The position numbers and the translations under genes are program-made. A model generated the notes under the pieces. The model ran no database searches. It was not told where the DNA came from and saw only the letters and a list, made by a program, of their open reading frames with translations. A stretch of 64,000 nt of DNA from Oculina patagonica (Eukaryota). Location: assembly GCF_052425735.1 (NCBI RefSeq), contig NC_135758.1, forward strand, positions 3,162,001 to 3,226,000, given 5' to 3'. This document shows, one piece after another, positions 732 through 35,570 of the stretch. Numbering within the stretch: position 1 is the stretch's first letter; every line of letters begins with the position of its first letter.

Positions 732-1943
732 AGAAACGCATAGCAGTCCAATGTCACTTTGTCACCAAATCACTTCATTGCAAAGATCTCATTGTTGCCG
801 ATTCTGCTACGATCGTCAAAAAAATAAAATATCCAAGTCGTGCAGTGAAGTAGTGCATTTTCCTTTATAAAATGTTAGGACAGCCCCCTGTGACCAAATT
901 AAAAAAATATATATATGATTTACAGTTTTAAAATTTATTAACATGTCTGATTTTGTTCTCTTCAATTTATACTAGTCTTGATTTTAAGACGGTTTAACCG
1001 TCCTTAAATTCATATTAGACGGTATTCTGTCACAGAATTCCGTCTGAGATGTGCTTCCTGTCTTCTAATATGAATTCGCTAATTGATGTTTGAGTGTGTG
1101 TAACTCAAAGGAGACCGATTTGAACAAAAAATTAAGTCATAGACTAAACAATCTAAAGAGCTAAAATAATAAAACTAAAGTTACCAGATTTTTACATATA
1201 TCAGCTGTATTGGCTTAAGTACTACAAACATAAATGCTGTATGATATTTGACAGTGCCATCGTTTTTCTGAAAACATTGCTATGTATTTGTGTCTATTTT
1301 CTCGAGAAAGATTGCAAAACCCGGTGCAAATGTACTAAGCATATATTGCGGTCGATTTTAGGAATCTTTTAATTTGCCCCAGGCAATTGCTAAGAAGGGA
1401 ATCATATATTTACCAAAAAGGAATCAAACTAAAGAAAAATAATATAACTAGCCGCTAGTTTAAAAAGTTGGTGACAAAGTTCATTTGATTTTAAGAGCGC
1501 GCTTCAAACTTAAGATCCCTGTAAAGAAACTTAGCTGTGTTTTGACATTATGCCCCACACTATACAATACCCATCCTTAACGCGAAACAAATTGGTACGA
1601 CTTCATCAATGCTATGTTGTTTCTAGCAAGTTTTTAGCAAGTTTCTTGCCTTCGATACCAATAGCGCTATATAAGTTTTATCATAATCACACATCGCTGA
1701 GTTCACGCCAGTTTAGAAAAGTACAAATCATTATTCCAAGAAACGGGCTTGAGCGGTTCACGCTTCGTTGATGATTCGGAAATGAAATCAGCTGTTGCGC
1801 TCAGTGTGGGGTAACTTGTTTTGATGCGACAATCATCGCATAAGCTTTATAATTTATTGACCGTCAAAGTACAATCGGTGAGTGAGTCAGTTACAGAGTA
1901 AACTACAACAGCTCGACGGGATTGTTTCTATTGAAGCGTTTTT

Positions 1944-1970
1944 ATGCTCAACACGCCCTTTACGAAGCAA
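1944..1970 (+). CDS. Candidate alternative first coding exon MLNTPFTKQ
   Basis: Core motif at 1879-1906, then ATG...CAA|GTAAGT, phase 0. Confidence 0.5.
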
Positions 1971-2117
1971 GTAAGTGTATTTCATGTAAGAGCAAGCAAC
2001 AGTATTATACAAAAAGCATGCATGTAGTATTTCTTGCCTTTTCAGTTGCCGCAGAATTGCATGATTATAGTAATGAAGTCCAATGTACTCTACAGGGCAT
2101 AAAAGTGATCTCTTTAA

Positions 2118-2620
2118 GGGTCTTTTTACATGAGCCCGGTTTACGGGCTGCCTCGGTTACCAGGACGAATTTTGACGTTAGTTCATATGAAAAATTTTAG
2201 CACGGTTGACGGGGATAAAAATTCAAGACACGAAGCCAAAATGGCGACACAAAAAGTTGCATCTTTCGCGACTATCGTAGCTTTATTGACCCTTGTAACT
2301 TTACTTTTAAAGCGAATTCGCATATTCCTAAAGTGGAAGTAGATACAAGCAAAATTATGCCATTTTGACAGCCTAGTTACGAAAGAGAAGCTATTTTCTC
2401 AAAAAAAAAATTGCGTCCTGGCGGCTGGGCTGGAGTGTTCAGATGGGAACATTTTCTCCCCGGTTGCTGATATCTCCGTTGCAGAAACCGAGATATCGGT
2501 AACCGGGGTGGCCCGCCTTTTCATATGAACACATCGAAAATTTTACAAAAGAAAATAGGAGTGAGCCGAGATCTCGGTAACTGGGCCAGCCCGGTCAACC
2601 GGGATCATATGAAGAGGCCC
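2118..2620. mobile_element. PIF/Harbinger-type MITE
   Basis: Imperfect TIRs GGGTCTTTTTACATGAGCCCGGTT / AACCGGGATCATATGAAGAGGCCC with TAA TSD. Empty site in the paralogous block at ~14241-14253. Confidence 0.8.
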
Positions 2621-3946
2621 TAAAATGTAATTTTAATTCAGTGTTGTGATAGCCTTCTTTTTTGTTATTGCGTTTAATGGAAAAATTAGTTGACGGAACT
2701 TTTCATTCGTTTGAAAAGATACAGCCATTCGACACTTACATTGGTCAGCGCTAGCATGCACTCATGATAGCAGGTTATATGATGACAACTTGCAAAACAT
2801 GCCTTCGTTTGTGAATCTGAGCTTCGCTGAAACCTCGAAAACATAGAAATCACTAGACGAAGATTTCGAATGCGAAACCAATTGCGTTGACATCGCTCTC
2901 TTGGCCGGTATTTTTTCTCAATCCATAAATTGATACATCATATACAATCAAATAAAGTTATATACATCATATACAGTCAAATAAAGTTGTTTTCCTATAA
3001 ACTAGATCTAATAGCATCTTGCAGCCAGAGAGAAACGTTTTTGTGACGAGCAAAATGTCTAGACAAACTTTTGATATATATTTTCAAAGACGTTTATCAG
3101 GTATATCTTTAAACAAAGAGGTTTTCTTAGCAGGTATGTCTTGAGAATTACTTGAAGTTCTGTGCAGAAAAAACTTAAAACCAACCGACCCAGTAGTACA
3201 ATGCTGCTTTGCAACATGATTGCAACGGCTTTGCAACGGCTCGATGGAAGAGCATGTAACATGAATGGATTCCGTGTATAAATAAAGTTTTTGCCTAACC
3301 TTGCCTTACCTTACCTTACCTTTTAACTATTGCACCAACCAAAACTGACAGTTGCCGACATTAATTGCATTTGGTTTATTTTGATTCGTTTAATTGTAAA
3401 TTGTTCCACCGATGTGTTTGTCTTATCTCCCACTTACATCTTAAAATGCGTAGATAACCAAATATTTACTTGACAAAAAAAAGACAAAATTTACATAAAA
3501 GCGCTCAGAGCAATTAACAGACACAAAATAATTTCCTTTCACTAATTATATGAAATTACTTTAATAACACTACATTAAATTACATTACAGCACTTATCAG
3601 TTTTTCCAAAATGTTTTGTGGAACCGATCATTGGAAGATATGGTATGATTCCTTTCCTTGTTTGATTTGAAAGTTTTGCCATGATAATACACTATATGCT
3701 CAAGTGAGATCAATCGATGAATCAAGTGGCATGTTTTATTAACGTGTGATTAATGTTAAGCTCAACTTGTTTTGATGTGTGCAGTGGAAACCATACTTCT
3801 GGCATCTCCCGATAACTCGAAGCAAAATTTATTTCTCTCTACACAATCGAATACTTCAATTCTACCCGCGATAGATTCATCTCTCGAACTAATTTCACTT
3901 CCCTTGGAGATTCGAGAAATCTGGATTCCACTCTATATCATCTGCT

Positions 3947-3978
<32 letters not shown>

Positions 3979-4959
3979 TGGTTTTATTCATAACAACCCT
4001 TTAGAATTTGATTGGAGTTAGCGTACAATTGGTTGAGTAAAAAACTATGGTTGAGTTATGGGTCACTTATAGAGTGCTTGGCGATGCGTAATTAATCTAT
4101 TTTCGAGTGACAAGAGCTTTTACATTCGTCTTTTGGAACAGAAAGTACAAGTGAACATCAACTAAGAGAACATGTCTAAAAGTTTTAATATGAGGCTGGA
4201 GCGTTTCGACGACATATTTTATACTACTGAAGCAACACAGGCGACTCTTCAAGCGACAAACTCATCATCAGGGGAATCTGTTAAAATATTCAGTCCATGC
4301 AGCTCTTTCCATTTGATAGCCTTGGATTACGTTAAACATAGTTATAGCATCTGACTTTTTTTCTGACATTGATGCACGGAAAGTTTGTTTCCCAAAGTAG
4401 ACGTATTTGAATACACAATTCACTAAGGGTCCATTATCTACCGGTCATAGCTAGACTAAACAATATACAGAGCTCAAAAACAAAACTAAACTAAGTCACG
4501 GAAAGGAAACTGCCGAAACAAACGAGCAAAAGGAAACAAGATCGCCGAAACAAGCGAATGTATCTGACATTTAATCTTGTTTCGCTCGAGCTCGGTCGTT
4601 TCGGTGATCCTGATTTCGTTTCGTTATGGAGACTTGTTTTGGCAATAGCTTGAAGATCATTGTGAAATGATTAAAACGCAGTTGGGCGTTGCAAACACGG
4701 GAATGACTCACCAATTGACCCTCCTCCTTTTTTTTTCAATTAAACCAACCATTCATTCGCCTCTGCAGTAAAACATTTTAATTTGGTCGCAGGGGGCTGT
4801 CCTAACACTTTTTAAGGATAATGCATTACGAAACTGCACGAAGTTTAGGCTTGGATTTTTGGTATTTTAGACACTGAGTCGCAACAGGATCTGCAACAAT
4901 GAAATCTTCGCAATTGAGTGAGGCGGTGACAGAGTGAACTACGACTGCTAAGCAATTTT

Positions 4960-4986
4960 ATGCTCAACATAGCCCTTTCAAAGCAG
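4960..4986 (+). CDS. Candidate alternative first coding exon MLNIALSKQ
   Basis: Core motif at 4915-4945, then CAG|GTAAGT, phase 0. Confidence 0.5.
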
Positions 4987-5446
4987 GTAAGTGAACGTCA
5001 GTTGTAAAGTAACTGCGTTGTCTTAGCAGCACATGTAAAAACTGAGTTAGGTGCACTTGTTGTAGTTTTTAAAATGAAACTGGTGGAAGGAATGTTTACA
5101 CACTGTGCAGCTTCACTAACGAAAGCAATTTTAGCCAGAACACACTTGATAAGAGAATTAAACGAACCCGTCCTTAACCGCTTGCGTAAACAACATTATA
5201 AATTTTAATAATCAGTGACTACAATTCTTTGTTCCTTCTTTCTCATGTTCCTTGGCGGGCTGCATCACCAGCTTTGGTGTCCCTTGAGTGAGGTGCTTCA
5301 AATCCAATTCAAAGCTAGACTAGTACTGTGAGATTACTTGTCCATTCTCGCAGATATTCCGACGGGATGATAATTTCATAAAACGTCTGGCTTCTACACA
5401 TTTTTCAAGAGAGGCATATTGTGTGAGCAATAAACAAATACTAAAC

Positions 5447-5645
5447 TATCCAGTGGATAGCGTAGTATGATTTGACAGCACTTATCCACTGGATAGTGAT
5501 TTATCCAGTGGATACCGTTATCCACCCTTTGAACAAACTGGGCCAGACAAATCGCTATCCAGCGTAGAATGTTTTACTAACACTTATCCGCTGGATAGCG
5601 ATTTTTTCTGGTGATAGCGTTATCCAGCTTTTGAACAACCGGGGT
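5447..5645. repeat. Interspersed repeat built of palindromic TATCCAGTGGATA units
   Basis: Multiple TATCC(A/G)(G/C)TGGATA palindromes and two TTTGAACAA motifs. Absent from the paralogous block at ~12590. Confidence 0.65.
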
Positions 5646-6181
5646 TAGATCTTTTCATTAAAAAAGGTCATTATCATAAGGACCCATTATCCATGAGATA
5701 GTATTTTTCAGCACTACGTAAAACGATTGTGCGGCTAAAATTAAAATGTAAACAAGTTATTTAAAAACCAACCAACGTGAACAAACTGTATGTTTAATTG
5801 TGCTAATGGCCTGGAAATGAAAAATGATTTTGAACTGAATTTGGTACAGAGTTTAAAGATGATAATGCATAAACAGTATTGCTATGATAGCTTCAAGATC
5901 ATTTTGAAAGACGAACACTGCAGTTTTTGGTTGCAAACATAGGAACGACTGATCGATTGACCTCTCCTTTCATTTTTAATTGAACTAACATTTCCTACCT
6001 CTTAACTGTGAATCATATATAATTATTTTTTAATTTGGTCACAGGAGGCTGTCCTTACATTTTTTTTTTAAAGGAAAACGCATTACTTAACTGCAAGACT
6101 TGGATATTATATTTTTAGACGATCGTAATAGAATCGGCAACAATGAAATCTTTGCAATGAAGTGAGTTGCTATGCGTTTTT

Positions 6182-6208
6182 ATGCTCAACATGTCCCTTT
6201 CAAATCAG
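6182..6208 (+). CDS. Candidate first exon MLNMSLSNQ with GC donor, core motif largely deleted
   Basis: CAG|GCAAGT at 6209. Confidence 0.35.
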
Positions 6209-6450
6209 GCAAGTGAACTTCAGTTGCGTTGTAAATCAGTTGTTAATAACTCGTATGATTACAGACCAAATTGGACTCCACTCAGTCATTTTACCATTAT
6301 TTTTACACTTCGCTGAGTTACCGTCAATTTAAAAAAGCACACATCAGCATTCCGCAAATTTGGCTTGAGTCAGAGTACAATCGGTGAATGCGTCAGGTAC
6401 AGAGTAAACTACAACAACTTTTCGCGACTGTTTCATTCTGAAGTGATTTT

Positions 6451-6477
6451 ATGTTCAACATGTCCTTTACGAAGCAA
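6451..6477 (+). CDS. Candidate alternative first coding exon MFNMSFTKQ
   Basis: Core motif at ~6385-6413, then CAA|GTAAGT, phase 0. Confidence 0.5.
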
Positions 6478-7059
6478 GTAAGTGAATTTCAAGCAAGAGT
6501 ACGCAACAGCAATATATTAAAAGCATGAAGTCTTTGAAGTGTTTCTTCCTTTATTTTCAGTTGCCGCGGAATTGATTTTGACAGCAATGGAGTCCAAATC
6601 ATGTCTTCGTTCGCGATTCTGAACTTCAAAATAACGAAAACCTAGTAGTCAATCGAGCAAGAATTCGAATGCAAAACCAATTCCGTTGACATATCTTATA
6701 TCTGGGTATGTTTTCTGAATCAATAAAATGATAATTTTTACATTTTTTCTCCAAGAATTGACCTTTCTGTGACGCGCAAATGTCTTGGCAATCTTCTGCG
6801 AAAAATTTTAAAAGAGGTTCTTGAGATTTATCTTTGAACAAAGAGATGTTCTTACCATGTGCGTCTTGAGAAAACTTGTAGTTCTGTGTAAAAAACCTAA
6901 AATTAAACCGACCAACTCAGTAGTATACAGTTCCTATGCAACATGATTGTACTAACCACAACCGACAGTCGGCATTTTATTGCATCTGGTTCATTTAGAT
7001 TCGTCCAATTGTAAATTGTCTCACTGATGTGTTTCTTTAATCTCCCAATTACATCTTAA

Positions 7060-7667
7060 CCCTTTCAGTGCTAAATTTATCCAAAAACAGGGTTTTTTTC
7101 TACCGTTAAACTGAATTTTTGATGCTACGATCCTGAATTTCCTTTAACTTTGCTTAAAAAGCACTTTTCCACAATGCAGCAAGATTTTGAGGAAGATTCC
7201 ATAGAAAAATGTACAAAATTGTACTTTGGCGCATGCGCATAAGCCAAAATTTGGACTTTTTTTTTTTTTTTGCGAAATCGTTTCCATTTTTTTTTTCTTG
7301 CTCCTTTTCCTTTCGTTTCTCTCGGCTTTGTTATTTCCACTTCTTTCTACTGTATCCGCCCTTCCTTTAGACCAAAATGGTTTTGATTAAAACATTGGTA
7401 AACCCTGAAAAGAGGACCTCGATCTTTTACAGGTGTTTTGGCCTGTTTTAGCACCGATTTTGCACTAAAAAGTGATTGACTTTTTCTCGATTAGCTCTGT
7501 CAGGATGCGACCGATACGCAAAATGAATAGTTCTTTGAAAAGGTCAAACCTAGCTCTATCAGATGCTTATCACTAAAATCTGCTGACTTTCAAATTGATG
7601 ACGTCACAAGTGGATCATTGACTGCTCCTCGAAATGTCGAGAAAAGTCGACTTTAGCAGTGAAAGAG
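7060..7667. mobile_element. TTAA-flanked non-autonomous DNA transposon (piggyBac-type)
   Basis: TIR CCCTTTCAGTGCTAAA / TTTAGCAGTGAAAGAG, TTAA on both sides. Empty site TACATCTTAAGTGCCT at 14871-14886. Confidence 0.8.
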
Positions 7668-7901
7668 TTAAGTGCCTACTAAACAAATATTGACTTGACA
7701 AAATATACAAATTTTCATTGCAGCGATGACAGTCAATAACAGAGATAAAATAACTTCCTTTCACTAATTACATAGAATTACTTAAATTACACTAAACTAC
7801 ATAACAACATTAAAGGTTATTCAGTTATGTTTTATGGAAATATATAACCGATTAGCCGACGATATGGTAAGATTCTTCGTCATGTACGACTTGAAAGTAT
7901 G

Positions 7902-8038
7902 GGATCAATTTAGGTTTCTGGGAAACTGCTCACCTACCCCTCCCCAAACCTAACATTAACCCTTACTTATCGCTTTGGGCAAAATGTTAGGTTTGGGGAG
8001 GGGTAGGTGAGCAGTTTCCCAGAAACCTAAATTGATCC
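7902..8038. mobile_element. Hairpin MITE with 8-bp TSD
   Basis: Perfect ~56-bp inverted arms. TSD AAAGTATG at 7894-7901 and 8039-8046. Empty site at ~10709-10720. Confidence 0.9.
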
Positions 8039-8677
8039 AAAGTATGTCATGATATACATTACAAGTCAATTGATGCACCAAGACAATATACATTACAATT
8101 GTATACCTGTCATAGACAACCTACAGAGCTCAAAAATAAAAATAAACTAGACCACGGAAAAGAAACGGCAGAAACAAACAAAGGAAAGGAAGCAAATTCA
8201 CGGAAACCGGAAGCGAATGTATCGGACATTTTATCTTGTTTCGTTTCTTTCGGTCGTTTCGGTGATTTCGTTTCGTTTTTCGGCTTTTTCTACCGGCATG
8301 CTGATTATTGAGGCTTGTTTTGCCATTAGCTTCAAGATGATTGTGAAATAATTAAAACACAGTTGAGTGTTGCACACATGATGCCTCGCCAGTTGACCCT
8401 CCTCCGTTTTAAATTAAACCAACACTCCAGTCGATCGTCTCAGCAGTAAAACGTTTTCTTTTCATTTGGTCGCAGGGGGCTGTCCTAACATTTTTTATAT
8501 TAAGGAAAATGCATTACGTAACAGCGAGACGCTTAGGCTTGGATTTTTCATTTTTTTGACAGTCGCAACAGGATCGGCAATAATGAAATATTCGCAATTG
8601 AGTGAGTCGGTGACAGAGTGAACTACAATAAGTGTTCAATAAGTGTTCTTGGAGTGCAAAATAGTTTTTTTTTTTAA

Positions 8678-8710
8678 ACAGACGTTTCGGGGAAACCCCT
8701 TCATCAGTGT
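8678..8710 (-). ncRNA. Minimal type I hammerhead ribozyme (inverted arm)
   Basis: Reverse complement ACA-CTGATGA-A-GGGG-TTT-CCCC-GAAA-CGTC-TGT with perfect stem II. Confidence 0.75.
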
Positions 8711-9421
8711 AAATGTGATGACTTAAAAGGAACGCTTGATCGTACGTTAAATGTCTTGCGTGAGCGTCGTTTAAAAATAAACAGAGCGCGAGATTGCGCG
8801 CGCTCAGCGCACATGACAAAAAATTTAAATGAACATCAGAATATTAGTCTGAGAATACAAATGTGAATTTAAAAGTTTAAGTCAATGTTCATGCCACTAG
8901 GGGCTAGTGTCTTGTAAGTAAAGATCATCCTCATCGCTCCTCCCTTCGTCTTTCAGCCGCCGGTCCAGCAACTTGCTTAATAACAGATACTGACATGTCG
9001 TGGATGGAATTGTGGCCCCTTTGGTTAAAATGTTCGGCCACGGGGAAACCACCGTTCTGGTACCATTGGTTGTTGGGGTAACCTTCAACTGAGCGGAGGT
9101 GCTCGCCAAACCTGTCTGCAAGCCTACGACCAGTCTCTCCGATGTACATTGATTGACAACGGCAGCATGTGATGGCGTAAATGACTCCGGTCGTAGTGCA
9201 AGTGTGGTGTCCTTTCGGGTGCACAACTCCGTTCGCGTGGTTGATGTTTTGAGTTTTTCCGGTGAATGCACATGTCCGGCACCTAGGTCGCTGACAGGGA
9301 AAGGTCCCGGCTTGTTCCTGTGGAGGGTTTGAGGAGAAGGTGCTATGAACTAGGATGTCTTGAAGGTTAGTATCCCGCCGGTAAACGCACATGGTCGTGG
9401 TCGTGAAGATGTTCTTTGTTC

Positions 9422-10234
9422 TGTGTTGTAGTATCGGACTACAACACCAAGTCCAATGAGATGGCATCATTCTTCAAGGCGAGAGGCTACCCTAGTGAAG
9501 TAGTTGCAGCCGGGCAAAGAAAGGCAGCAGACACCGACCGTCAGAGCGCACTACAGCATTCACGAAACCAAACATCTGAGGAAAAATCAGAAAAGACCCG
9601 CATGATACTAACCTACCATCCAAAGAACCAGGAAGTCAAGAAGATTTTGTTAAAGAACTTTAGTATCCTGACCGACGACCCTCGAACAAAGAACATCTTC
9701 ACGACCACGCCCATGTGCGTTTACCGGCGGGATACTAACCTTCAAGACATCCTAGTTCATAGCACCTTCTCCTCAAACCCTCCACAGGAACAAGCCGGGA
9801 CCTTTCCCTGTCAGCGACCTAGGTGCCGGACATGTGCATTCACCGGAAAAACTCAAAACATCGACAACGCGAACGGAGTTGTGCACCCGAAAGGACACCA
9901 CACTTGCACTACGACCGGAGTCATTTACGCCATCACATGCTGCCGTTGTCAATCAATGTACATCGGAGAGACTGGTCGTAGGCTTGCAGACAGGTTTGGC
10001 GAGCACCTCCGCTCAGTTGAAGGTTACCCCAACAACCAACGGTACCAGAACGGTGGTTTCCCCGCGGCCGAACATTTTAACCAAGGGGGCCACAATTCCA
10101 TCCACGACATGTCAGTATCTGTTATTAAGCAAGTTGCTGGGCCGGCGGCTGAAAGACGAAGGGAAGAGATGAGGATGATCTTTACTTACAAGACACTAGC
10201 CCCTAGTGGCATGAACATTGACTTAAAATTTTAA
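9422..10234 (+). CDS. Penelope-like pol C-terminus: end of RT thumb (RGYP), Cys/His linker, GIY-YIG endonuclease (truncated)
   Basis: Motifs FFKARGYP, CQRPRCRTC, GVIYAITCCRCQSMYIGETGRRLADRFGEH, and AEHFN...H. Confidence 0.85.
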   Translation, partial: CVVVSDYNTKSNEMASFFKARGYPSEVVAAGQRKAADTDRQSALQHSRNQTSEEKSEKTRMILTYHPKNQEVKKILLKNFSILTDDPRTKNIFTTTPMCVYRRDTNLQDILVHSTFSSNPPQEQAGTFPCQRPRCRTCAFTGKTQNIDNANGVVHPKGHHTCTTTGVIYAITCCRCQSMYIGETGRRLADRFGEHLRSVEGYPNNQRYQNGGFPAAEHFNQGGHNSIHDMSVSVIKQVAGPAAERRREEMRMIFTYKTLAPSGMNIDLKF

Positions 10235-10394
10235 ATTCACATTTGTATTCTCAGACTAATATTCTGATGTTCATTTAAATTTTTTGTCATGTGCGCTGCG
10301 CGCGCGCGCAATCTCGCGCTCTGTTTATTTTTAAACGACGCTCACGCAAGACATTTAACGTACGATCAAGCGTTCCTTTTAAGACATCACATTT

Positions 10395-10427
10395 ACACTG
10401 ATGAAGAGGTTTCCCCGAAACGTCTGT
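10395..10427 (+). ncRNA. Minimal type I hammerhead ribozyme of the PLE pseudo-LTR
   Basis: ACA-CTGATGA-A-GAGG-TTT-CCCC-GAAA-CGTC-TGT (one stem II mismatch). Confidence 0.7.
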
Positions 10428-10563
10428 TTTTTAAAAAAAAAAAAACTATTTTGCACGCCAAGAACACTTATTGAACACTTATTGTAACAATTGAGTGCTA
10501 CGCAGCAAAACTCTTTTTATGTGACAGAGTGAACTACGACTGCTAAGCGTTTCTATCCTCAAC

Positions 10564-10581
10564 ATGTCCCTTTTAAAGCAG
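10564..10581 (+). CDS. Candidate first exon MSLLKQ (cassette split by the Penelope insertion)
   Basis: CAAC ATG TCC CTT TTA AAG CAG|GTTAGT. Confidence 0.4.
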
Positions 10582-11040
10582 GTTAGTGAACGTAAGTTTT
10601 GAAGTAACAGCGTTGTTTTAACAGCAAATTTAAAAACTGAGTAAGGTGCTCGTGCTGTAGTTTTTATAATGAAAGTGGTGAAGGAATGCTTGCACACATG
10701 TACGACTTGAAAGTATGTCATGATATACATTACAAGTCAATTGATGCACCAAGACGCATGGCTGCTTAACGCTTGATTAACGCATGGGCGCCGATTTATT
10801 TTGTTAAGTTCAACTTGTTTTGATGAGCCGGCGCAGTGTACTAAGCACGTCTTGTGGTCGATTTTGTGAATCTTGTAATTTCCTCCATGCAATAGCTAAG
10901 AAGTGAAGTAGATATATATCGACCAAACAGGAGGCAAACTAAAATAGAGAATTGCCGGGGCCCCGGTTTTTTTTGTTTAAATTTTTGAAAAACAATAACT
11001 AATTGCTAGTCAAAAAAGTTGGCGGCAAAGTGCATTTGAA

Positions 11041-11245
11041 GATGTAATTGCTCAACATGACACGAGCATGGGACAAAGAAAAATCAGAGTCCCCTACCGG
11101 AATCGAGCCTATGGCCTCCCAGATACCGGTTGGGCGCTCTAACCAACTGAGCTACTAGAGACTCGTGGTGAGCACGGCCATTCACTAGGTTGACATGTAA
11201 ATGGCCGAGCTCACCACGAGTCTCTCGTAGCTCAGTTGGTTAGAG
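11041..11245 (-). mobile_element. tRNA-derived SINE with inverted partial second head
   Basis: Minus strand GTAGCTCAGTTGGTTAGAGCG (A box) ... GGCTCGATTCC (B-box-like). 11137-11245 folds back on itself. Confidence 0.7.
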
Positions 11246-12083
11246 ACTTTTATGAGAACATCATGCAAGCAAAGCACATGTATGTAAGTTTAAATATATA
11301 TGGGGCTGGAACGTTTCGACGACAGAATCTATATTACTGAAGCAACAAAAGTGGCTCATCAAGCGACAAACCCATCAGAGGAATCTCTTTATTATTCAGT
11401 ACAGCTCTTACTTTCCATTTGATTTTCTTGGATTACATTATATATAGTTACGTTACAGCGTCCGAGCTTTTTCTGACATTGATACGTGGAACGTTTGTAC
11501 CCCAAAGTAGACGAGTTTGAATACACAATTGTATACCAGTCATAGACTAAACAACCTACAGAGCTCAAAAATAAAACTAAACTAGACCACGGAAAGGAAA
11601 CCGCAGAACAAACGAAGTAAAGGAAGCAAATTCACGGAAACCGGAAAAAATGTATCGGACATTTTATCTGTTTCGTTCGTTTCGGTCGTTGCGGTGATTT
11701 CGTTTCGTTGTTTCGGCTTCTTCTACATGCTGATTATGGAGGCTTGCTTTGGCAATAGCTTCAGGATGATTGTGAAATAATTAAAACACAGTTGAGTGTT
11801 GCACACATGATGCCTCACCGATTGGCCCTCCTCTTTTTTTTTTTTTAATTAAACCAACACTCCAGTCGATCGTCTCAGCAGTAAAACGTTTTCTTTTCAT
11901 TTGGTCACAGGAGGCTGTCCTACCATTTTTTTAAGGAAAATGCATTACGTAACAGCAAGACGCTTAGGCTTGTATTTTTCCTTTTTTGTCAGTCGCAACA
12001 GGATCGACAATAATGAAATATTCGCAATTGAATGTCAATGACAGAATGAACTACGACTGCTTAGCGTTTTTATGTCAGTCAAG

Positions 12084-12101
12084 ATGTCCGTTTTAACGCA
12101 G
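12084..12101 (+). CDS. Candidate alternative first coding exon MSVLTQ
   Basis: Core motif at ~12029-12057, then CAG|GTAAGT. A local ~65-bp duplication adds a second ATG-less donor at 12167. Confidence 0.45.
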
Positions 12102-13329: not shown

Positions 13330-13356
13330 ATGCTCAACATGTCTCTTTCAAAGCAG
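13330..13356 (+). CDS. Candidate alternative first coding exon MLNMSLSKQ
   Basis: Core motif at ~13286-13315, then CAG|GTAAGT, phase 0. Confidence 0.5.
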
Positions 13357-22836: not shown

Positions 22837-22859
22837 TTTTTTTACTTTGTTGATTGCAG

Positions 22860-23900: not shown

Positions 23901-24168
23901 AATTAGCCATGTTCAAAACGAGCAGGGGACTGGGTACGAATATTCAATATCGATTGGATTGAAAAAATGGGCCTGTCATTTGAAAGAGCATCCAAAAATT
24001 AGTAGCTCAACCAAATTTGAGAGTTATTGGTTTAAACGCAAAGGCATGGAACTCTTTTAAAAATCGTTTAAATAAGAGAGCTTAGTATGGCTGGATGGAC
24101 AGTTTTTCAATCCAATCGATATTGAATATTCGTACCCAGTCCCCTGCTCGTTTTGAACATGGCTAATT
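23901..24168. mobile_element. MITE with perfect ~66-bp TIRs
   Basis: AATTAGCCATGTTCAAAACGAGCAGGGG... and its reverse complement at 24103-24168. Confidence 0.8.
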
Positions 24169-24979: not shown

Positions 24980-25056
24980 TGAGTGAGTTACTGAGAGAAC
25001 GAATTGCGACACCTGAACGATTCTATGCTCAATATGTATCTATGAAGCCGAGTAAT
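24980..25056 (+). pseudogene. Degenerate first-exon cassette (ATG CTC AAT ATG TAT CTA TGA)
   Basis: Diverged core and an in-frame stop. Confidence 0.4.
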
Positions 25057-26856
25057 GTAGTATCATTTAGGTGTAGGGGTCTGTAGTAGCATACCACTCC
25101 CTATTAACAGTTATAATAGGCGCTTACTTAATGTTAAGAATACTTCATCTACTTTAAGCCAATTAGTCAGCGTCTATTACTTGGCGGCTTGTAGAACCTT
25201 TCATTTCTAATGTTGTGATGACATCTAAAATGGCTTAATATGAGTGATGTTGCTGCTACAATCTGTCCTTTTATTTTTGTTATCGACGCCCGCGGTGTAT
25301 ATCATTCAAAACGACTTATCAAGCGACAAACCGAACTGAGTATTCTTTGTTATATGCTTTAAATACGTCTATCCACCTTTCAGCCAAATAAAAAAACTTT
25401 GTGTCAACAAAAAAGTGCTCGTTGTGTAAGTTTTTGATGGGTGCAATTTTGTCGGCGTCTCTGACTTGGTGCATCTCAATTGCTGAATCAATCTGTATGA
25501 TTGCATAACAATCCCCGCCATGATTGATGCACGGACTCAGTTTTATATAGTCAAAGTCGGAACTAAGCAAAAGAGTTAGTGGCAAGCTAGTTTATATAGT
25601 TTGTCCATTCTTCCGGATATCTCGACGGGACAACTGCTTAAACTGACTCAAAACTGAGTAAAACTACGTTATTAAATTACATAAAACGTTCAGCAACTAG
25701 CTCGGTCGAATAAATTATCAGAGCAAAATATTGCGTGTCCCATTAGCGAAAGCAATTACTTCACTACTATTTTACGGTAAACAAATTCAGGAAACGCTCG
25801 TACTGGTGATAGATGTCGCTTTACAAACATGTATTATGCAAGAAAAACCTCTTTAGGACTTCACAAACATGAAAAGTAAATAAGTTAATTGAAAACTAAT
25901 ATTATTGTAAGTTGATTGTGCAACTGAGTGGAAAGGTAAGATAATGTTGAACTGAAGCTGACTACGTAAGCGTAAAGACGATTATGTGATCTTGCTTTAG
26001 CAATAGCTTCCAGATCTTTGTGAAATAATGAAGGCGCAGTCTCAGGTTGCGTGTGTAGGCTTAACTAATATGTGCAAGGCCTTTTTAATTAATTTTTCTT
26101 TTATTAAAATAACATTCCATAGAGTCTGCATGATTTCATCTTAAAATTGATTTCTGTTTTCTGCTTTCGTCTTCCGCCGGACTCCATATTTTTTCCTGGA
26201 AAATACGAACCTAAAGTGAATTTTAGGCTCGGATATTTTTCTTTCCTAGACTGGAGCAACAAGTACAACAAGAAAGAATTTTCGCCTCATTATGTAACAC
26301 CGGTCAAGTTGGCATTAAAGATACTGCGGAACTGGCGCGTCGGTGAATTCGAAGATTATAAAACAGTTGTCTTGGTTCCAGACTAATCTATTTTCATGTG
26401 TAAATCATCTTTTGTCTTCTCAATCCTATTTCGTTTTACAATTGATTTACCTAGAAAGACTGAAAGAATAATAATATGCGTGAGTCATTGACAGAGTGAA
26501 CTACGACTGCTCATACAGATGTATGCCTATCTGTCCCATTTAACGTATTTGCTGCTGCACGATTTTTTTATTCATAGTAATATACTATTTAATATTAGCA
26601 AGACGACAGTTTTCTCTTGTTTTGTAACACATCAAAGTCAATTCATCAAGATTTTACAAATGAACGATTATACCAGTCCGGTTTTACTTGATTCAAAGTG
26701 TCAATCATAATTTTTATTATTGTTTCTGGTCAGGCTTTACTGAGAATTTATTCACCGCCAAAGTAAAATCATTTGAGTGAGTCAGTGACAGAGTGAACTA
26801 CGACACCTCACAAAAATTGTTCCATTTTCGGGAAATATTAAGAAGAGCTAGATTTT

Positions 26857-26883
26857 ATGCTCAACATGTCTTTTTCAAAGCAA
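26857..26883 (+). CDS. Candidate alternative first coding exon MLNMSFSKQ (intronic)
   Basis: Perfect core at 26774-26804, then CAA|GTAAGT. An extra core without an intact exon lies at 26481-26510. Confidence 0.55.
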
Positions 26884-29597
26884 GTAAGTAAACATACTGA
26901 GCTTTTACTTTCAAAGCTAAGTAAGGGGTGCCATTTTTTTTAAGTCACCAATGAATAAAAAGCATCATTTAATCGGTTTAGCTCCATGCTACTCCTCAAA
27001 TACGTCTTCTCCAAGTTAACAGAACTTCAGTGATCTTTTAACCCGATTAGTGAGCGTATAACACTTCACGGCTTATTCTGGAATGTTAGTGCGTTCATTT
27101 ATGATGGTCTAATATCTTTAAACCAGACATCGATTCGGTGGGTGACAAACAGCTCCAAGTATCCAATTATTCGAGTCCACGCGACGACATTTACCATCTA
27201 AAAGATCGAAGCAAACTTCCTAAAGGCAGGTATGCTGAACAATCTCTTTGAAACTTCAATGCAGTGATTCCAATAAGGTTTTATTTTAAGCAATGTATAC
27301 CGTGGTTTTATTTTTATATAGCTGTCGCATCTGAACACATCAGACACTGACACATCAAAAGTCTCTTCCTATAAAAACATAAAAAGTGCATAGATTTATC
27401 AAACGCTTTACCGACGCGTATCGTGAGCTGTGCTATTTTGTTAACGTCTCTTACTGATGATGTATTTTTCTGAATCAAAAAGTAGCTGAGTCTTTCCTTA
27501 GCTTAAAACTCATTATTGAAAATTTGCCATATTGTTAAATTATCCAACTGAAAATAAAAATATTAGGTTCTCTTCGAATTCTCAAAAGGTCTTGAGATGA
27601 ACATCGCTGAATTTTCTTTGAAAAGTCCTTATGAAAAGATATGAGGTCTTTAAATGGACCATGTACGATGCTCAGGACCTTGAAGCCACTATCAAGCGAA
27701 GTTCAAAATTGATAGACCGTCCAAGAAAGAATTTTTAAATATTTTTCATTACTAAAATTTGTGACTGCGTGGCGTTCGCCTGGTTAGAACAACAGCTCCT
27801 CCTGCCTTTTGGTTCTAAGAGAAGGTTCCAAGAAGCTCTCACTTAATCGAATTTAGTTCAATTGAAATTCTAGGCTTATGGTATCTTTTGCCACTTTTCG
27901 TAAGTTTAAGAATTTAAAGGGTTGATTTAAATCCATCCTATATCTGCATGAGACTTTTGGTTTATCTTTACAAATTGTTGCGCAGTATTTTGACCTGCAT
28001 GCGAAGCACGTTATGGTGACATGCTGATTGTACTAACTATAAAAAATAAACTGACCTCTCATTGAATGAATCTTTAGTAAAAAGCAAACTATTTCTTTGT
28101 ATTGCTATTAATCAGATGTGAGCTCAAAATAACGTCTAATTCCGTGATTTTTAAATCAGCTAAAATGGTATAAGTCTTCAAACGTCGAATACGCTCGCCC
28201 AAATTTACGATTTTAGGTATTCTCATGCTTTGTTTGTTCATTCGTTCAAGCCTGTATTTCCCAAGCGGTAAAATGGTTTCGTGTAACCACGTCTGCTATT
28301 CTTTATAAAATAGAAGAAGACTCTGAGATACGGCTGAAATTAAATTGGCTATGGAGGGGCTTTAGTCAAGAAACAAAGCTCGCAGAATCAAAACCTTTCT
28401 CGAGATCGATAGTGAGCATGAAGCCAGGGGCGTTGTTAAAATAAATAAAAAATAATGATGAAGATAATAAAGAAAACTTTAATAAAGCTCTTATATGGTC
28501 GAGTGGTCCGTTTTTATCGATGGAATAATTTCAATTGTATCCACATCATCTTGGATATCATCGCTAATCCGCAGTCAATAATCTAATCGACGCTGGATTA
28601 TTGCCTTTCTTTTGTTTCCATGTAAACCATTTCATAATTTATTGCATGGGTTTTATGTCCGACATTATACATGGAAAGTTTAATCCAAAAATAACATTAA
28701 AGACAAAAGTCCCCACTTTTTTTGGTCAAAAAAAAAAAAATCTACAGAGCTCATAAATAAAATATATTTTCCATAAAAATTTTGGATACATATGTGCAGT
28801 ATTTTTTTTTTTTACCGTTCAACTGCGGTTCTGAAAACATTGCTAAGTATTTGTTTTGACCAGTGGAAAAAGTGCACTGGAGTACTCTGTAACTTATTTG
28901 GTTGATTTCACACATTATTCAACTATTAATATCGCAGGAATCTCGTAATAATATCCCAGGCAATAACTAATATATTGAGCGAAGTAGATATCGAAGAAAA
29001 AGCAAGCAAAGAAAAATGATAAGGCTACCACGAAATAAGGTCATGGAATAGAACGCCTGATCGCGCGCGTGCAATATGCTGGTCACGTTTTTAGGTTTGT
29101 TATATAATCAATGAGAGATACTACTACTAGGAGATTACAACGAGTTACTACGATCACTGATGAATCGGATGACCCCAACTTCTCATACTGCATTTGATCG
29201 GTTTTTCGACCAGATACTTTTCCATCTCAACAACAAAAATTGAATATTTTTAAGGCATGAATATTCCCTTTCTCAAACAGACACAACAACAGATTTGCAC
29301 CATATTACGTAACACATCAAGTATGGCAATGTATCAAAAAGGTTGCTAAAATTAGATAGTACCTGAGGTAACGCAACGGCGAGTTTAAAATGAAAGACCA
29401 ATTGTGTCCATTCCGGAATATCTTGTTTTCATATGCCAATCATCGGTTGTTTTCCTGATTTTATTTAGCTGTTAAGTATTCATTCCACCGTGAAATACAA
29501 TCATTCGAGCGAGTCAGTGACAGAGTGAACTACTTCAGCTCAAATAGATTGTTCCATTTTCAAGTAACGGTCGATTTAAAACGATTTTCTGATCAGC

Positions 29598-29615
29598 ATG
29601 GCGCTTTCAAAGCAG
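29598..29615 (+). CDS. Candidate alternative first coding exon MALSKQ (intronic)
   Basis: Core at 29507-29533, then CAGC ATG GCG CTT TCA AAG CAG|GTAAGT. Confidence 0.55.
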
Positions 29616-32600
29616 GTAAGTGAATATCTGCAGCTGAAATTTCTACTAAACTGCCTTGATAAGTTTATAAGACCAAATAAATTTAGTCATTTATTCAGTT
29701 AAACCTGGAACTGAGCGTTAAACACTGCTCAAGACGGTTTCTTAAGGAAAAGTTGCGCTTTTAAATTATGGTGGTTTGATATATCTTATAAGCCAGACAT
29801 CTGCGGGTAGCTAACAGTTTGTGCGATTCTGGGGTTCTTAGGGACGGAATTCGAATCAATCAAAAATAGCAAATTGAAGCTGCCTTTCAAAGAGGGCATG
29901 CTAAGCGCATGCAAGCTCAGGTTTGCAAGATTTGCGCGGTAAGCTTTTATGTCTAGTCGTTTTATGTTTAGCCTTTACCAACGCGTATAATATGAGCCGT
30001 ACTATACGAAGGGAGAGCAATTTTGTTAATGTCCTCGCGCTTTCTTCTGGGAATCCTTTTCCCACGCGGTAAAATGACCTCATGTAGCCACAGCTATTCT
30101 ATTTAAAATAGAAGAAAACTACTTGATAAAGTTAGTTCAAAGGATTTAAATCATAAAGCAAGTTAAGAGAAATAAAGATCTTATCCCTTAGTGATAGTAA
30201 CCGAGGAATATTTTCCAAGGGCTGTCGGTTTCTCCTTGGTGGCGTTTCAGACACATAATTCTTCGTAGTTAGAAGGCGATTATGGATGAGGCATTAAAAG
30301 GCCTCCGTTCTTCTATTTACTTCAGGCGTTCCTTCTGATTTTTCTTTACATCTCCTAACAAAGTTAAAAACCAATGAATTCATTTCTCACATATGACATA
30401 TCTGTAAAAGCCGTGAGCCGTACTGAAGGAATTGCAATTTTGTTAACATCTTTGGCACGGTACGTTTTCTGAAAGAGGCATGAGTGGCACGAGCATTGTA
30501 GACGATTCCTTACCGCGTATGACTTGGTTAGCTCAGCAGGATTGGGTTCTTGAAATTCCCAGATACTTTGAAGACCTTGAAAATGAGAAAATGTATTTTC
30601 CCATAAAAAAATTACTGGGTTTTATCAGCATTTCAGAGTCATTAGTCTTTGAATTTTATTAAGATGCCCTTCGATGCTGAAGACTACTTGAAAGAAAAGC
30701 CGATTTTGATAATATCGTATTAAGATTGTTATTTATTGTATGAAGTGATTGAGGTGTACCTAAATAATCGTAACTCGATAAAGGGTTGTGTATTTTGTGT
30801 CCACCCGGCCCGTGCTTGAATAGCTTCAGTTGTCTTAAAATGCAACGAGGTTGTAAAGTTGTCACTAAGCCTGGATAGTAAGTTAGTAAAAAGTTTATTT
30901 CCGTACATATCTATATATTTAACCCGTGTGGGCTAACTGGGGACACTTATTAACCCACACAGAAAACTGTTCCAAAAGTTATTCAAGTATGACTGCATAG
31001 CCTAAAGTGCAAACAAGCTGGCTTGAATTTAAATGCTCAAAATGACAAAACTGACTCCTCAAGTATCAAAATAGACTAACCCACAAGTCGAGCTCACAAA
31101 GTAATCCGGGGTCTATAAAATTAGGTACAGTGCTTCGCTTCTATACAGTGATAGAATTTTACTGTCTGGCGCCATTTATCTGACATTCACACGACCTCGA
31201 TTCTACAAATTATTACTTTTGAACTTCATCTGGTTATCCGACACTGATACGTGCAAAGTCTGTACACGAACGTGTCAATAGTTAGGGTCATTTTTAACGA
31301 CTAAAGATGCAATCGTCCAGAAAACACGCCAATTTGTGTGTGTACAACATGAGAAAGTTCTAATAGGTGCATAATATACATATAATTATATTTTTTAAGA
31401 AAACTGTGACGCATTCCGGCGACACATGTTATTTTTAGAAAGCCCAAGCAATAACCCTTTGGAGCCCAAATTATTTTTTTGTGAAATTCTTCAATTTTGG
31501 ATGAGTCTTATAAAAGTTGCTCTATCTTCAGTTACATCTGTCATATTAAAGCCAAATTTGGATATGTGACAGACAAGACATAGGGCTATCTGTCAATCAA
31601 TATATTTATTAATAAGTTACTTATAAATGATGTCTAACATGTGGTTGAGCATTAAGTTAGTGTAACGCAACATGTTGACTTCAATGCTTTTCACTGTCCT
31701 ACACTCTTGATTTAGCCATGAAAATTACTGCACATGTCTAGATTGATAGGCAATTTATTGAATATTATTTTGATATCACATTTGCTACCTTTGACTCTTT
31801 CAAAGCTACATTAGGCCCCTAAAAACATAGTAGTTGAGTGTCACGCGAAATAACTATAGGTAACTTTTCATACGAAAATGTTTTTGCTGTTGCACTCTAT
31901 CGTGTCCTTTTCTCCCTAGAAACAAAAACAAATGTTTCGTAGCCTTCCTGGATCAGAAAAATCTTCATTGCACTCATAATCTTCAGTATTATTGTCATGA
32001 AGGTTTAGTTCCTCTTGTTCTTCAACAAAATTATCATTCTCGGAGGAATAACTTCATTATTTTCATCCTCGGTGTCACCTTGTAAGCCTTCGACATCACA
32101 ATTCAACCATCGTCGGGTAGGTCAACGCTTTCGTCGAGATAATCGTGAATATTCGTCCAAAAAAAACTTCCCCTACCTTCAAATATGTCGGGCTAAGTCA
32201 AGGAAAACTTGTTCTCTTCATAACAATCGAAAATTTCACCAAAATTCTGCAGAAACTCGCTAAAATACTAAAAACAGCACAAAATGGTGGATAATTTTAC
32301 TGCCAGGCGTTGCAATGCAGGGGGAGACTGGAAACTAAAGCGGGAGTCCGCTGAGCGAAATTGCGAGGTGTGCTTTGATGTCCGATATATCGGACACTGG
32401 GCCGCAAAGGGATAACTAGTAAGAAAATTAGATATCGACAAATAACAAACCAAAAAATATATATAGCGACATCAACCACCGTTGAAGAAAATGTAGACAA
32501 GCCATGCATGGATTCCCTCAAAGTAACTAAAATATTTTTTTCACTTTCCGACATAAGGCCCCAGATAAGAACTCCTGATAATGAGCATGCAAAAAAAAAA

Positions 32601-33164
32601 CGTGATGTGCCACGTTTTAGATTTCTTATATAACCAACGCGCAAAACAAATTAAATACATCAAAACAAATTAAACGCTTTTAGCAAGAGACAGCCGGAAA
32701 TGTGATTATATATCTCAGAACCCACGAGAAGGATCGAAAATGTAAATGGCTAGATGATGTTGAAAAGCTCGGGAAACTGCGGCGAAGTTGTTGTAGATGG
32801 AACTGAAGGACTAATCGTCGATGGCAGATGGAGGGACATAAAAGTCAATTGCTGCTGAACAAGTTTTCTGTTCCTTGGTAATAAATTAATTCGTCTAAGA
32901 AACACAGTAGTTTTCCCATATTACGTAACACAACAAGGTCAATTGATACATCAAGATTTTATGAATGGAGGATTATTCTAGTCCGGTTAAACTTGTTTTC
33001 AAGTGTCAATCATCCGTTTGTTTGATTGTTTCAAATAAGGCTTTAGAAGTTACTTACCGCCAAAGAAAAATCAGTTGAGTTAGTCAGTGACAGAGTGAAC
33101 TACGACAGCTCAATCAGATTGTTCCATTTTCAAGTAAACTGTTTGAAGAGATTTTTTACTCAAA

Positions 33165-33182
33165 ATGGCTTCTTCAAAGCAA
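33165..33182 (+). CDS. Candidate alternative first coding exon MASSKQ (closest to exon 3)
   Basis: Core at 33076-33106, then AAA ATG GCT TCT TCA AAG CAA|GTAAGT, phase 0 into 35205. Confidence 0.6.
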
Positions 33183-35204
33183 GTAAGTAATTATCAGTTT
33201 TACCCTTCAATGCTAAGTAAGGTGTGCCGTAATTTAAATCAACGGAGACTACAGAGAATCATCCAAAGGCACAGTTACATGCCACTCCCTAAAAATGTCT
33301 ACTCGAAGTTAAGAACACTTCATCCAAAGTTAAGAGCACTTGATCGATTTATTTCGTGAGCGTTCGACACTCGGCGGCTAATTAAGGAATGCAGTGGAAT
33401 GCAGTCAAAAGGATAAAACGGACTTTCTAAGACAACAAATTGAATAATACTTTCCAAATTTACTGTGTGGTGATATTTTGATAGAGCTGTGTTTAGCTAT
33501 TTAATAATTTTCACTTCTAATGTCACATTTAGCGTTAAAACGATTAAGCCAGATTAGTAGACGCTAAAGCAACGCGCATTGTACCAACAGAAAAGAGGAG
33601 CAATTTGTTAAGGGCTTTGACAGATTGTACTTAGTGTATTTCGCCGAGTCAAAAAGTGACTGAGTGTTAAAAGTTATAATTCTCGCTTTGTAAGATTCAA
33701 GTTGGAGATTGCGTATATCTGCCTCCTATCACAGGTAGCCCAAGCTCCTAAAGGAGCCGTCAACATATAGACCACATATGACATTGCGTAATAACGTTAT
33801 TATAAGGGTTTGTATGGGAATTTACCGATCGTAAAAAATAATTCAAAATAGAGGGAAAATATCCAATAAAATTCACTTACCTATCCTCTTCTATGCATAT
33901 GTTGTGTTTCTATGCCGTTTGGAGGCGATTTGAAGCCATTTCAGTAGGTTTTAGGTTCGCTGGTTTCCTCTCTATATATAATTATATAATGAAATGATTG
34001 ATCGGTTCTCCCTTTTCATTAAAATAAACGTTCACATAATTTGCATTTTAAAAAATCGTTTCAAAAATGAGTTTTTTCCGCTATTAAAATTAGTACAACA
34101 AACATTGTTTGTCCTGTTATGTAATAATGTAAATCAAGAAGCTTCTAGTCGATATGCCCGTGACTCGACACGTGTTGGCAGACACCCAAGAAGTATAACG
34201 TTGGAAAGCGCCTAGGCACAAACGAGAGGACTAATTCCTATTTACAAATGGTTTGATTGCTGTTAGTTTAAATTGTGTTCATCTTTGGGTGTTAATAGAT
34301 TTTTTTTTTAATTGGACTTAAGGATTTGTCTCGTCTAAACTGACTTTAGATAGTCGCAACAAGAACGGCAACAGAGGAATCATCACATAATCAGTAATTT
34401 TTTTTGCAACCTACAAAGCCAACCATTAAGTTTTTGCCATCTTCTGTTAATTCAAAACGCTTGAACTGCTCTGAGCGACTGATTTTGGCTTATCGTTTAT
34501 TTTTCCCAATGATCAATTATCAAGATGCCTCGTCATGTTTGGTCAACGCGTCGGTGATTCGAAAATGAAAGAGCTATTGTGTCCAAGTCTGCTTGCATTG
34601 GTCAAGCATCAGTTGCTATCTCGGTCCGATCTGGCTACAGCATTTATTCACAGAAATGAAATTCCAATCAGTTTATAGTGAACAGAGTGCATTGCGACAC
34701 AGGGTCCCAAAGGAGATCTGAAGGAAAGAGGAAGGATGGAGTCTAGCAATTTGCTTTGAAACCTGGAGACTCGTTGTTTTTCTAAAATTATCATGCTACA
34801 GAGCGTTAAGCCCTGGAAACGTTTTCCCTGGAGCCCCAAGCCCTGATTTTTTAATGGGGCAACTGGATATAGATTGTGGTATCCAACCTTCTCAGTAAAA
34901 AGTTTATTGTACTGAAGACTGCGGACCAGAGCGTAGGCGAGCTTTTTCTCTCAAAATAGGCGAATCAGAGTAAGGCACAACTTTCTTCTTGCAATTAGAA
35001 ATTTTTTGTCACTGAATTTTTTGGTCAATACAATACAAGTTGCCTTTTCTGTCATAACTCTATTAGGCGCACCCAATTGGAATGCTAGTCCGTTACATGT
35101 TATCCCTCGCATTGTTTCTAGTTGCTTTAACAATTCATTAGTATTTCTTTTACACTCACCATACGCGTTGTAAGACTAAGTACTAAAAATGCTTTGTTCT
35201 CCAG

Positions 35205-35570
35205 TACCCAGCCTGTTTGTCCCTTGAGGAACTCAAGCGCCAATGTCCTGCCTTCGCGGACAAGGTTTGCCCATTTTCCAAGCTACCGGACGAAAAGAAA
35301 GGCGTGGCTGCCAAGTGTCCTGAATTCAAGAACGGTTGTCCGTTTAAAGGCTGCAAAACTGTTGGAGAGTTTGAAGACAAGCTGGGTCAAATGCGCGACC
35401 AGTGTAAGGGTGACGCTGCTTACGTGCAGTTTCTCCGAGATACCCACCACACTGCCAAAGTGAAGGAGGTTGACGATGGAATGGCTTGTCCTTTTTTCCA
35501 CACTAAGGGTGGCTGCCCCTTCGCCAAAGACACTAAAGGAAAGCCAATACTTTCTCCGGACTACATCGTG
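35205..35570 (+). CDS. Exon 3: Cys-Pro repeat domain 1 (YPACLSLEELKRQCPAF...SPDYIV, 122 aa, 6 CP motifs)
   Basis: TTTGTTCTCCAG| acceptor, GTG|GTATGT donor, 366 nt phase 0-0, GC-richer than flanks, clear paralogy to exon 4. Confidence 0.85.

Follow-up and report, generated by a model that had tools for sequence, protein, structure and literature searches.

In CYP19A1, BDNF and NR3C1, several alternative leader exons with their promoters are joined to one acceptor. UGT1A and the clustered protocadherins are multiple-variable-first-exon clusters (PMC1885805, PMC3325998), and the genes of coral GFP-like proteins have a short exon 1 (PMC4657232, gene structure). Here, we analyzed a 64,000-nucleotide stretch of the coral Oculina patagonica (GCA_052425735.1, CM126635.1:3,162,001-3,226,000, plus strand; hereafter the window), in which a promoter/first-exon cassette recurs upstream of the gene LOC144652460. 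A preliminary description, made from the letters of this stretch, had read some 15 cassettes as alternative first exons of one gene with shared constant exons. Our analysis very probably reduces this picture to a gene with three alternative first exons, preceded by orphaned distal copies of a module that is shared with GFP-like genes.

Like UGT1A and the protocadherins, the locus has tandem paralogous first exons with their own promoters, cis-spliced to common exons. In those clusters, however, most members are in use and a variable exon supplies an entire, diversified functional domain, whereas the variable part of the coral gene amounts to 6 to 9 residues, the coding difference is negligible, and 3 of the ~17 copies are supported. 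The locus works as an alternative-promoter gene and lacks two defining features of the protocadherin and UGT1A type, because its variable exons encode no diversified domains and the use of most members is unsupported; the likeness to these clusters that had been proposed at first is, therefore, abandoned. As in CYP19A1, BDNF and NR3C1, promoter choice alters the 5' untranslated region (UTR) and regulation, not the protein, and a single acceptor is used, but the leader exons of these genes are mostly unrelated in sequence, whereas the coral first exons are duplicates of one module, each with a start codon. Finally, the cassettes share with the GFP-like genes of a paralogous locus (L003) and of loci L046-L051 the core, a 5' UTR of ~100 nt, a MALSKQ-type peptide and a phase-0 GTAAGT donor; unlike in these genes, the module in the window precedes exons encoding a Cys-Pro-motif domain or nothing, and never GFP-like exons.

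RESULTS

Proximal first exons of LOC144652460

The three RefSeq isoforms X1, X3 and X2 of LOC144652460 begin with MLNMSFSKQ, MALSKQ and MASSKQ, as encoded by cassettes 26857, 29598 and 33165; beyond these residues they are identical to exons 2 and 3 of the window (Table 1; copies are called by a position that lies within them). The RNA evidence consists of Logan assembled contigs, which show presence and not absence, and from which minor 5' tips are dropped. In RNA run X5, one contig is made of an Illumina adapter tail, positions 26781-26883 and then 19 nt identical to 35205-35223, that is, the 26883/35205 splice. This junction contig carries 35207C, which separates the window locus from its paralog L052. 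Cassette 29598 is represented by a contig over 29530-29615 in run X2 (depth, 54.5) and by one over 29187-29615 in run X5 (depth, 302), both ending at the donor; these and all depths below are contig means and are not comparable. Moreover, X5 contigs entering exon 2 bear a 25-nt loose end that matches the 29598 exon at 24 of 25 positions. The 26883/35205 and 29615/35205 junctions are both present in this one run, giving at least two mutually exclusive first exons joined to one acceptor.

In two cassettes the 5' ends lie within the conserved core, namely, the adapter-marked end at 26781 and the start of a 29598-type contig at the same core position. Transcripts start within the core, which is thus not an upstream promoter box.

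No exon-level contig of cassette 33165 was present in RNA runs X1, X3, X5 and X8. A contig of run X8 was considered as a candidate for this cassette and rejected, as the 29598 type fits it better (104 nt with a CAG end; four paralog differences and a known single-nucleotide polymorphism make up the five mismatches seen). Altogether, two first exons are shown by RNA, and the third, 33165, is supported by a RefSeq model. These three starts are already annotated in RefSeq; the further 13 to 14 copies, their A and B subtypes and the homology to GFP-like genes are absent from the annotation.

Constant exons and the Cys-Pro domains

The public record L053 is 100% identical to positions 16857-17397 and 18014-51556 of the window. 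The joint 35570/36013, across a GT..AG intron, occurs in 4/4 RNA runs. Exons 2 and 3 are consequently serial exons of one mRNA, and 35205 and 36013 are not the alternative acceptors for which they had been taken. A run X8 contig of 1,431 nt extends beyond 36999. Each of the two exons encodes a domain of ~115 amino acids (aa) with six or seven Cys-Pro dipeptides, and the variable part of 6 to 9 residues (MALSKQ, MASSKQ or MLNMSFSKQ) stands before an identical body of 237 aa.

Cys-Pro motifs are the heme regulatory motifs of heme oxygenase-2 (PMC2742820). Pfam gave the domain only a marginal MSG match and a subthreshold zf-CCCH_DUS3L match, and we left it unnamed; sequence searches of the ESM Atlas and the PDB with it returned nothing usable. 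With HMMER, an exhaustive search brought up 104 relatives, of which several are located N-terminal to a heme oxygenase domain. A heme-related role of the Cys-Pro protein may be suggested, since the domain is fused to a heme oxygenase domain in these relatives. In proteins P0054, P0067, P0096 and P0002, one to three Cys-Pro domains precede a heme oxygenase domain that is followed by a C-terminal membrane anchor.

Downstream, the GenBank model ACROYT_G000290 continues into an exon at 41272, giving a protein of 355 aa. A 3.9-kb tandem duplication of 98% identity spans 40089-47867, with exon-3-like Cys-Pro exons at 41272 and 45172. Separately, GenBank models a 204-aa gene at 41278-45483. The RNA contigs examined stop in the 3' UTR after 36360. 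Further Cys-Pro exon fragments lie on the minus strand at 58336-58509 and 62397-62516, with no cassette near them. In the literature, we found no paper on LOC144652460, on its cluster or on shared first exons of GFP-like genes.

Copies of the cassette and their subtypes

A cassette is made of a conserved 28-nt core, followed by an ATG, six to nine codons and a GTAAGT donor. The core occurs at eight places with at most three mismatches, against 0 expected from 100 shuffles. A profile built from 12 copies and run over the 64-kb window gave 16 matches on the plus strand and one on the minus strand (828-671), all within 671-33217, and none in the 33.3- to 64-kb part. The recurrence over ~33 kb noted in the preliminary description is thus borne out, and its ATG and donor sites all read as given; two copies are additional, one at 8544-8630 and the other on the minus strand with a GC donor. 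The versions with 18 nt between ATG and donor are not deletions: their first ATG is mutated and an in-frame second ATG (Met4) stands instead. Copy 12084 retains an upstream in-frame ATG, which leaves 30 nt to the donor. The leader measures 72 to 110 nt, and the spacing of the copies is irregular, from 0.3 to 10 kb.

Self-comparison and a tree sort the copies into three groups: the A type (1944, 6451 and 14111), the B type (4960, 6182, 8599 with 10564, 12084, 12151, 13330, 16695 and the inverted copy) and the proximal group (26857, 29598 and 33165), directly upstream of which lie dead copy 25025 and partial copy 26481. The distal copies are ordered as three repeats of a higher-order unit composed of an A-type and a B-type copy.

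The distal array is set off from the rest by two stretches of N (17398-17545 and 17852-18013), which interrupt neither a cassette nor an exon. Their flanks are collinear in L053, 616 nt apart as in the window, and in this record the interval is free of N. For the three used cassettes and for the gene, the sequence is uninterrupted throughout.

At the left end of the window, positions 1-586 form a 600-bp repeat with 38749-39351 (93.5% identity), joining this end to the region downstream of the gene; the repeat abuts the inverted cassette at 583-927. Between copies 14111 and 16695, the segment 15866-16471 is G-rich and of low complexity, Gly/Arg- or Pro-rich in all frames, with a GC skew of 0.24.

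Table 1. Positions of the first-exon cassettes, constant exons and intervening gene in the window
Feature	Position	Strand	Characteristics
First exon 1a	26774-26883	+	Core 26774-26801; ATG 26857; MLNMSFSKQ; GT donor at 26884; RNA contig and RefSeq isoform X1 (XP_078368591.1)
First exon 1b	29506-29615	+	Core 29506-29533; ATG 29598; MALSKQ; donor 29616; RNA contigs and RefSeq isoform X3 (XP_078368606.1)
First exon 1c	33076-33182	+	Core 33076-33103; ATG 33165; MASSKQ; donor 33183; RefSeq isoform X2 (XP_078368596.1) only
Constant exon 2	35205-35570	+	Phase 0 at both ends; 122 codons; first Cys-Pro-motif domain; identical to P0229, P0230 and P0236
Constant exon 3, coding part and stop	36013-36360	+	Second Cys-Pro-motif domain; 3' UTR to about 37155
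B type, inverted	705-828	-	GC donor; nearest relative, copy 6182
A type, intact	1879-1970	+	MLNTPFTKQ; GTAAGT
B type, intact	4915-4986	+	MLNIALSKQ; in the B clade with the L003 GFP-like first exon
B type, most of core deleted	6111-6208	+	GC donor, CAG/GCAAGT
A type, coding part intact	6385-6477	+	MFNMSFTKQ; core degenerate, upstream homology gone
B-type core, orphaned by insertion	8599-8626	+	One mismatch to core
Rest of the 8599 B-type copy	10521-10581	+	17-mer repeat; ATG 10564; MSLLKQ; weaker donor GTTAGT
B type	12027-12101	+	MSVKMSVLTQ or MSVLTQ; core with at least five changes
B type, partial	12149-12204	+	3' part only, without ATG
B type, intact	13285-13356	+	MLNMSLSKQ
A type, intact	14047-14137	+	MFNMSFSKQ
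B type, dead	16651-16721	+	Donor GG
Dead copy inside another transcript	24973-25038	+	In-frame stop; poor donor
Partial copy, core only	26459-26543	+	Core match
Intervening gene	21781-26113	+	GenBank 82-aa model, coding range 21781-24804 (L053 4925-7948); RNA contigs to 26113

State of the distal copies

Damage is evident in five to six distal copies, in the form of GG or GC donors, loss of the core, insertion of a transposable element or truncation. The insertion at 8624-10486 splits a B-type copy and consists of a 1.9-kb inverted pair of GIY-YIG open reading frames (ORFs), with arms at 8624-9421 and 9684-10486 that are 97% identical; it is probably Penelope-like. The conserved 17-mer described below stands on both sides of it (8610-8626 and 10521-10537), like a 17-bp target-site duplication.

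Among the junctions that had been proposed as a check, RNA contigs contain those from donors 26884 and 29616 to 35205. Cassette 1944 (1786-2070) is present in no RNA run of the contig index. It is present in DNA-like runs only (0.79 to 0.89), so the copy exists in independent DNA data. A distal-type N terminus is found in 0/12 members of the 90% protein cluster (all O. patagonica) and in no annotated isoform, and a search for transcript-derived proteins with such N termini found none. The sequence between the cassettes was also considered as a source of hidden coding exons and held only transposable-element ORFs and low-complexity ORFs.

The distal array is separated from the used cassettes by the intervening gene of Table 1, which four runs cover to a depth of 42 to 111 over 24.8 to 26.1 kb; run X3 shows a poly(A) loose end at 25414. 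Its exon at ~22.85 to 22.95 kb is homologous to an alternative first coding exon of isoform X1 of the paralog LOC144652427 (MPSSNRR...EKCPII...).

The mean pairwise identity of B-type cassettes is 0.66 to 0.74 versus about 0.5 to 0.6 for their flanks, a modest excess. For the intact sites of the B type, a rough estimate of neutral decay gives ~0.25 expected versus 0.5 observed (n = 8, not significant). Selection on the distal copies was considered and not retained, as the conservation profile and this rough expectation cannot tell constraint from young age.

Paralogous loci and GFP-like genes

Three paralogous genes lie on the minus strand of the same chromosome, LOC144666566 (L052), LOC144652427 (L054) and LOC144644470 (L003). 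Paralogs of the locus occupy 2.985-3.013 and 3.064-3.099 Mb. L052 is 96 to 98% identical to the window from 20.7 to 50.6 kb and has the same three cassettes. Compared with the window from 18 to 51 kb, L052 and L054 are segmental duplicates that comprise the entire gene and its three cassettes, at 96 to 98% and 81 to 98% identity, respectively. Short-read RNA will multimap among such near-identical duplicates.

L003, which we had considered as an ortholog from another species, proved to be a paralogous locus of the same genome. Its Cys-Pro gene is flanked by GFP-like genes, and in one GFP-like gene the annotated coding sequence starts with the ATG of a B-type cassette; a dead A-type copy is located 1.75 kb farther upstream. 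This GFP-like gene lies 240 kb away on the same chromosome and has a first intron of more than 5.8 kb. Four GFP-like loci of ERZ25067872, an assembly of another coral, and a Logan contig contain a single cassette each, 0.6 to 1.9 kb upstream of GFP exon 2, with MALSKQ or MALSTQ before GTAAGT. The module is thus placed upstream of GFP-like (PF01353) exons by position and annotation in L003 and by position only in L046-L051. No GFP-like exon was found in the 63.7 kb of readable window with the exons of L003 (all E > 0.3).

In the tree, the B clade (support, 100/100) and the A clade (97/96) each include a copy from L003, and the MAK(Q) first exons of the orthologous gene form a 100/100 clade without any window cassette. 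Forcing the proximal cassettes beside the exon of L001 was rejected (p-AU, 1.7e-9), and grouping them with GFP-type exons was not (P = 0.10), in tests for which the groups were named after the tree was seen and the alignment had only 262 columns. By its sequence, the distal A-type/B-type unit is homologous to the 5' end of the GFP-like gene in the paralogous locus.

The orthologous gene in other corals

The orthologous gene of L001 (ERZ25067872) has one cassette in the 10 kb upstream, MAKQ before GTAAGT, and the transcript-derived proteins P0178 and P0179 of related corals begin with MAKQ-YP. A scan of metagenome contigs with the exact 17-mer GTGACAGAGTGAACTAC gave at least seven coral contigs in which the core lies 0.5 to 1.5 kb upstream of orthologous exon 2 on the same strand; as the search demanded an exact match, this estimate of conservation is biased upward. 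Orthologous exon 2 is ~72% identical in protein in these contigs. Those reaching far enough upstream have TATAAA ~47 nt before the core and the first exon ATGGCAAAG/GTAAGG. The comparison of cassette numbers among corals suggested in the preliminary description thus gives one per orthologous gene, in L001 and in the coral contigs. A single first exon is the ancestral state, since there is one cassette in L001 and one core in the coral contigs, and the 17-mer is exactly kept in the 5' UTR.

In distant corals (L006, L007, L013, L019, L023, L026 and L032-L035), the 5' UTR of the orthologous gene contains the 23-mer TGGTCAGTGACAGAGTGAACTAC without variation, although their exon 2 is only ~72% identical in protein. 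GGTCA-G-TGACA would resemble an inverted pair of nuclear-receptor half-sites. The copies in the window start instead with TGAGTCA, presumably AP-1/MARE-like.

DISCUSSION

The preceding results very probably describe a gene with three alternative starts and a set of orphaned distal copies, sharing their module with GFP-like genes. We propose that LOC144652460 is a three-exon gene encoding a protein of 243 to 246 aa, with two Cys-Pro-motif domains that would be of the heme-regulatory-motif type. Exon 2 would be preceded, at 2.0, 5.6 and 8.3 kb, by three tandemly duplicated and diverged versions of the first exon. Every one of these would have its own start site in the core, a short 5' UTR, a start codon with five to eight more codons and a phase-0 GTAAGT donor, and each would be cis-spliced to the one phase-0 acceptor at 35205. 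The choice of version would thus alter the promoter and the 5' UTR and hardly the protein. The other 13 to 14 copies, 13 of which lie at 671-16750, would be extra duplicates of the same promoter/first-exon module; we infer that the distal ones are unused, and they are most likely orphaned 5' ends left by partial segmental duplication and now decaying.

The main effect of the analysis is to correct an over-reading, with 3 supported starts versus 15. The notion of many first exons with shared constant exons stands for cassettes 26857, 29598 and 33165, which are RefSeq starts, two of them with RNA; it does not extend to the other ~13 copies, given the lack of RNA for 1944, the lack of an isoform and the intervening gene. 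The alternative then offered, of orphaned first exons, fits the distal copies better. The suggestion that any diversification would be regulatory agrees with our data, as the peptides differ by just 0 to 3 residues in length.

Several observations weigh against the proposal of three used and many orphaned copies. An automatic RefSeq model is the sole support for the use of 33165. In run X1, exon 2 reaches a depth of 145, yet the three proximal first exons are without any contig there, which leaves part of the first-exon use unexplained. The 26857 junction aside, it is uncertain to which exact locus the contigs belong, since the RNA runs were taken from other individuals or carry other species labels and three paralogous loci of 96 to 98% identity exist; the RNA alleles 29535A, 29603C and 35482C match paralogs or other individuals. 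Cassette 1944 is the only distal one checked against RNA, via an assembled-contig index. Seven distal copies retain an ATG, an open frame and a GT donor, and each intact copy that lost one ATG kept the other. Finally, in the A-type copies 1944 and 14111, similarity to the used cassettes extends over ~90 nt of the upstream promoter and takes in a CAATCAT motif.

A rival reading, which we regard as quite unlikely, makes all 10 to 11 intact cassettes over the 33 kb alternative promoters and first exons of this gene, selected according to cell type or condition in the manner of protocadherin or UGT1A clusters. The distal copies do match in architecture, strand and phase and keep in-frame ATGs and donors, no acceptor precedes the cassettes, so that an elongating distal transcript would splice to 35205, and the first exon used in run X1 is unexplained. 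Against this, cassette 1944 is in no RNA run and no distal N terminus is annotated, an expressed and polyadenylated plus-strand gene stands between the distal copies and LOC144652460, and the retained intact sites are about as many as neutral decay allows. Moreover, the distal units are homologous to the 5' end of a GFP-like gene.

This homology raises another explanation, to which we give only a slim chance, namely, that the distal cassettes serve as functional first exons for GFP-like bodies in the masked stretches or far off, for the 82-aa gene or for noncoding transcripts. The B type is indeed the annotated first exon of the L003 GFP-like gene, at a distance of 240 kb on this chromosome and with a first intron longer than 5.8 kb, and the paralogous Cys-Pro genes have GFP-like genes interspersed among them. 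However, the readable 63.7 kb hold no GFP-like exon, cassette 1944 is absent from the contigs of RNA runs, and several cassettes are only 0.3 to 3 kb apart, leaving no space for a gene body.

That the cassette is part of a dispersed transposon or high-copy repeat, with ATG and donor by chance, is hardly credible despite the many copies, one of them inverted, and the transposable-element insertions nearby: within the 64 kb the copies lie only upstream of the gene, the module is at the orthologous position in at least eight other coral contigs and also before GFP-like genes, and it is transcribed and spliced and has no transposable-element protein or terminal repeats of its own. Equally negligible is a set of spliced-leader RNA genes with a trans-spliced leader, for which the short exon, strong donor and tandem repetition would speak, but no Rfam family reached threshold in 1-37500, a leader of 72 to 110 nt is spaced irregularly at 0.3 to 10 kb, and this leader holds a start codon in frame with one downstream gene to which it is annotated as cis-spliced.

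Returning to the gene with three starts and orphaned copies, one further and speculative hypothesis, on the unlikely side in our estimate, could be that the module, its 17-mer unchanged in the 5' UTR of distant stony corals, is common to GFP-like pigment genes and the interspersed Cys-Pro genes, so that the coral coregulates its pigments and a putative heme-binding protein. The Oculina Cys-Pro genes would then run on copies of the GFP-type module and not on the ancestral MAK(Q) exon, and the amplified upstream copies, some distal ones included, could act as extra promoters or enhancers setting the dose or the cell type of expression.

Our study sheds light on one short promoter/first-exon module that appears to serve two unrelated families, the GFP-like and the two-domain Cys-Pro proteins, interleaved in one 300-kb cluster. 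If true, this would be a clean natural case of the capture of a promoter together with a first exon, with phase-0 splice sites whose match leaves no seam. Should the light- or stress-responsive control known for coral pigments reside in this module, the Cys-Pro protein may be a coregulated partner of these pigments.

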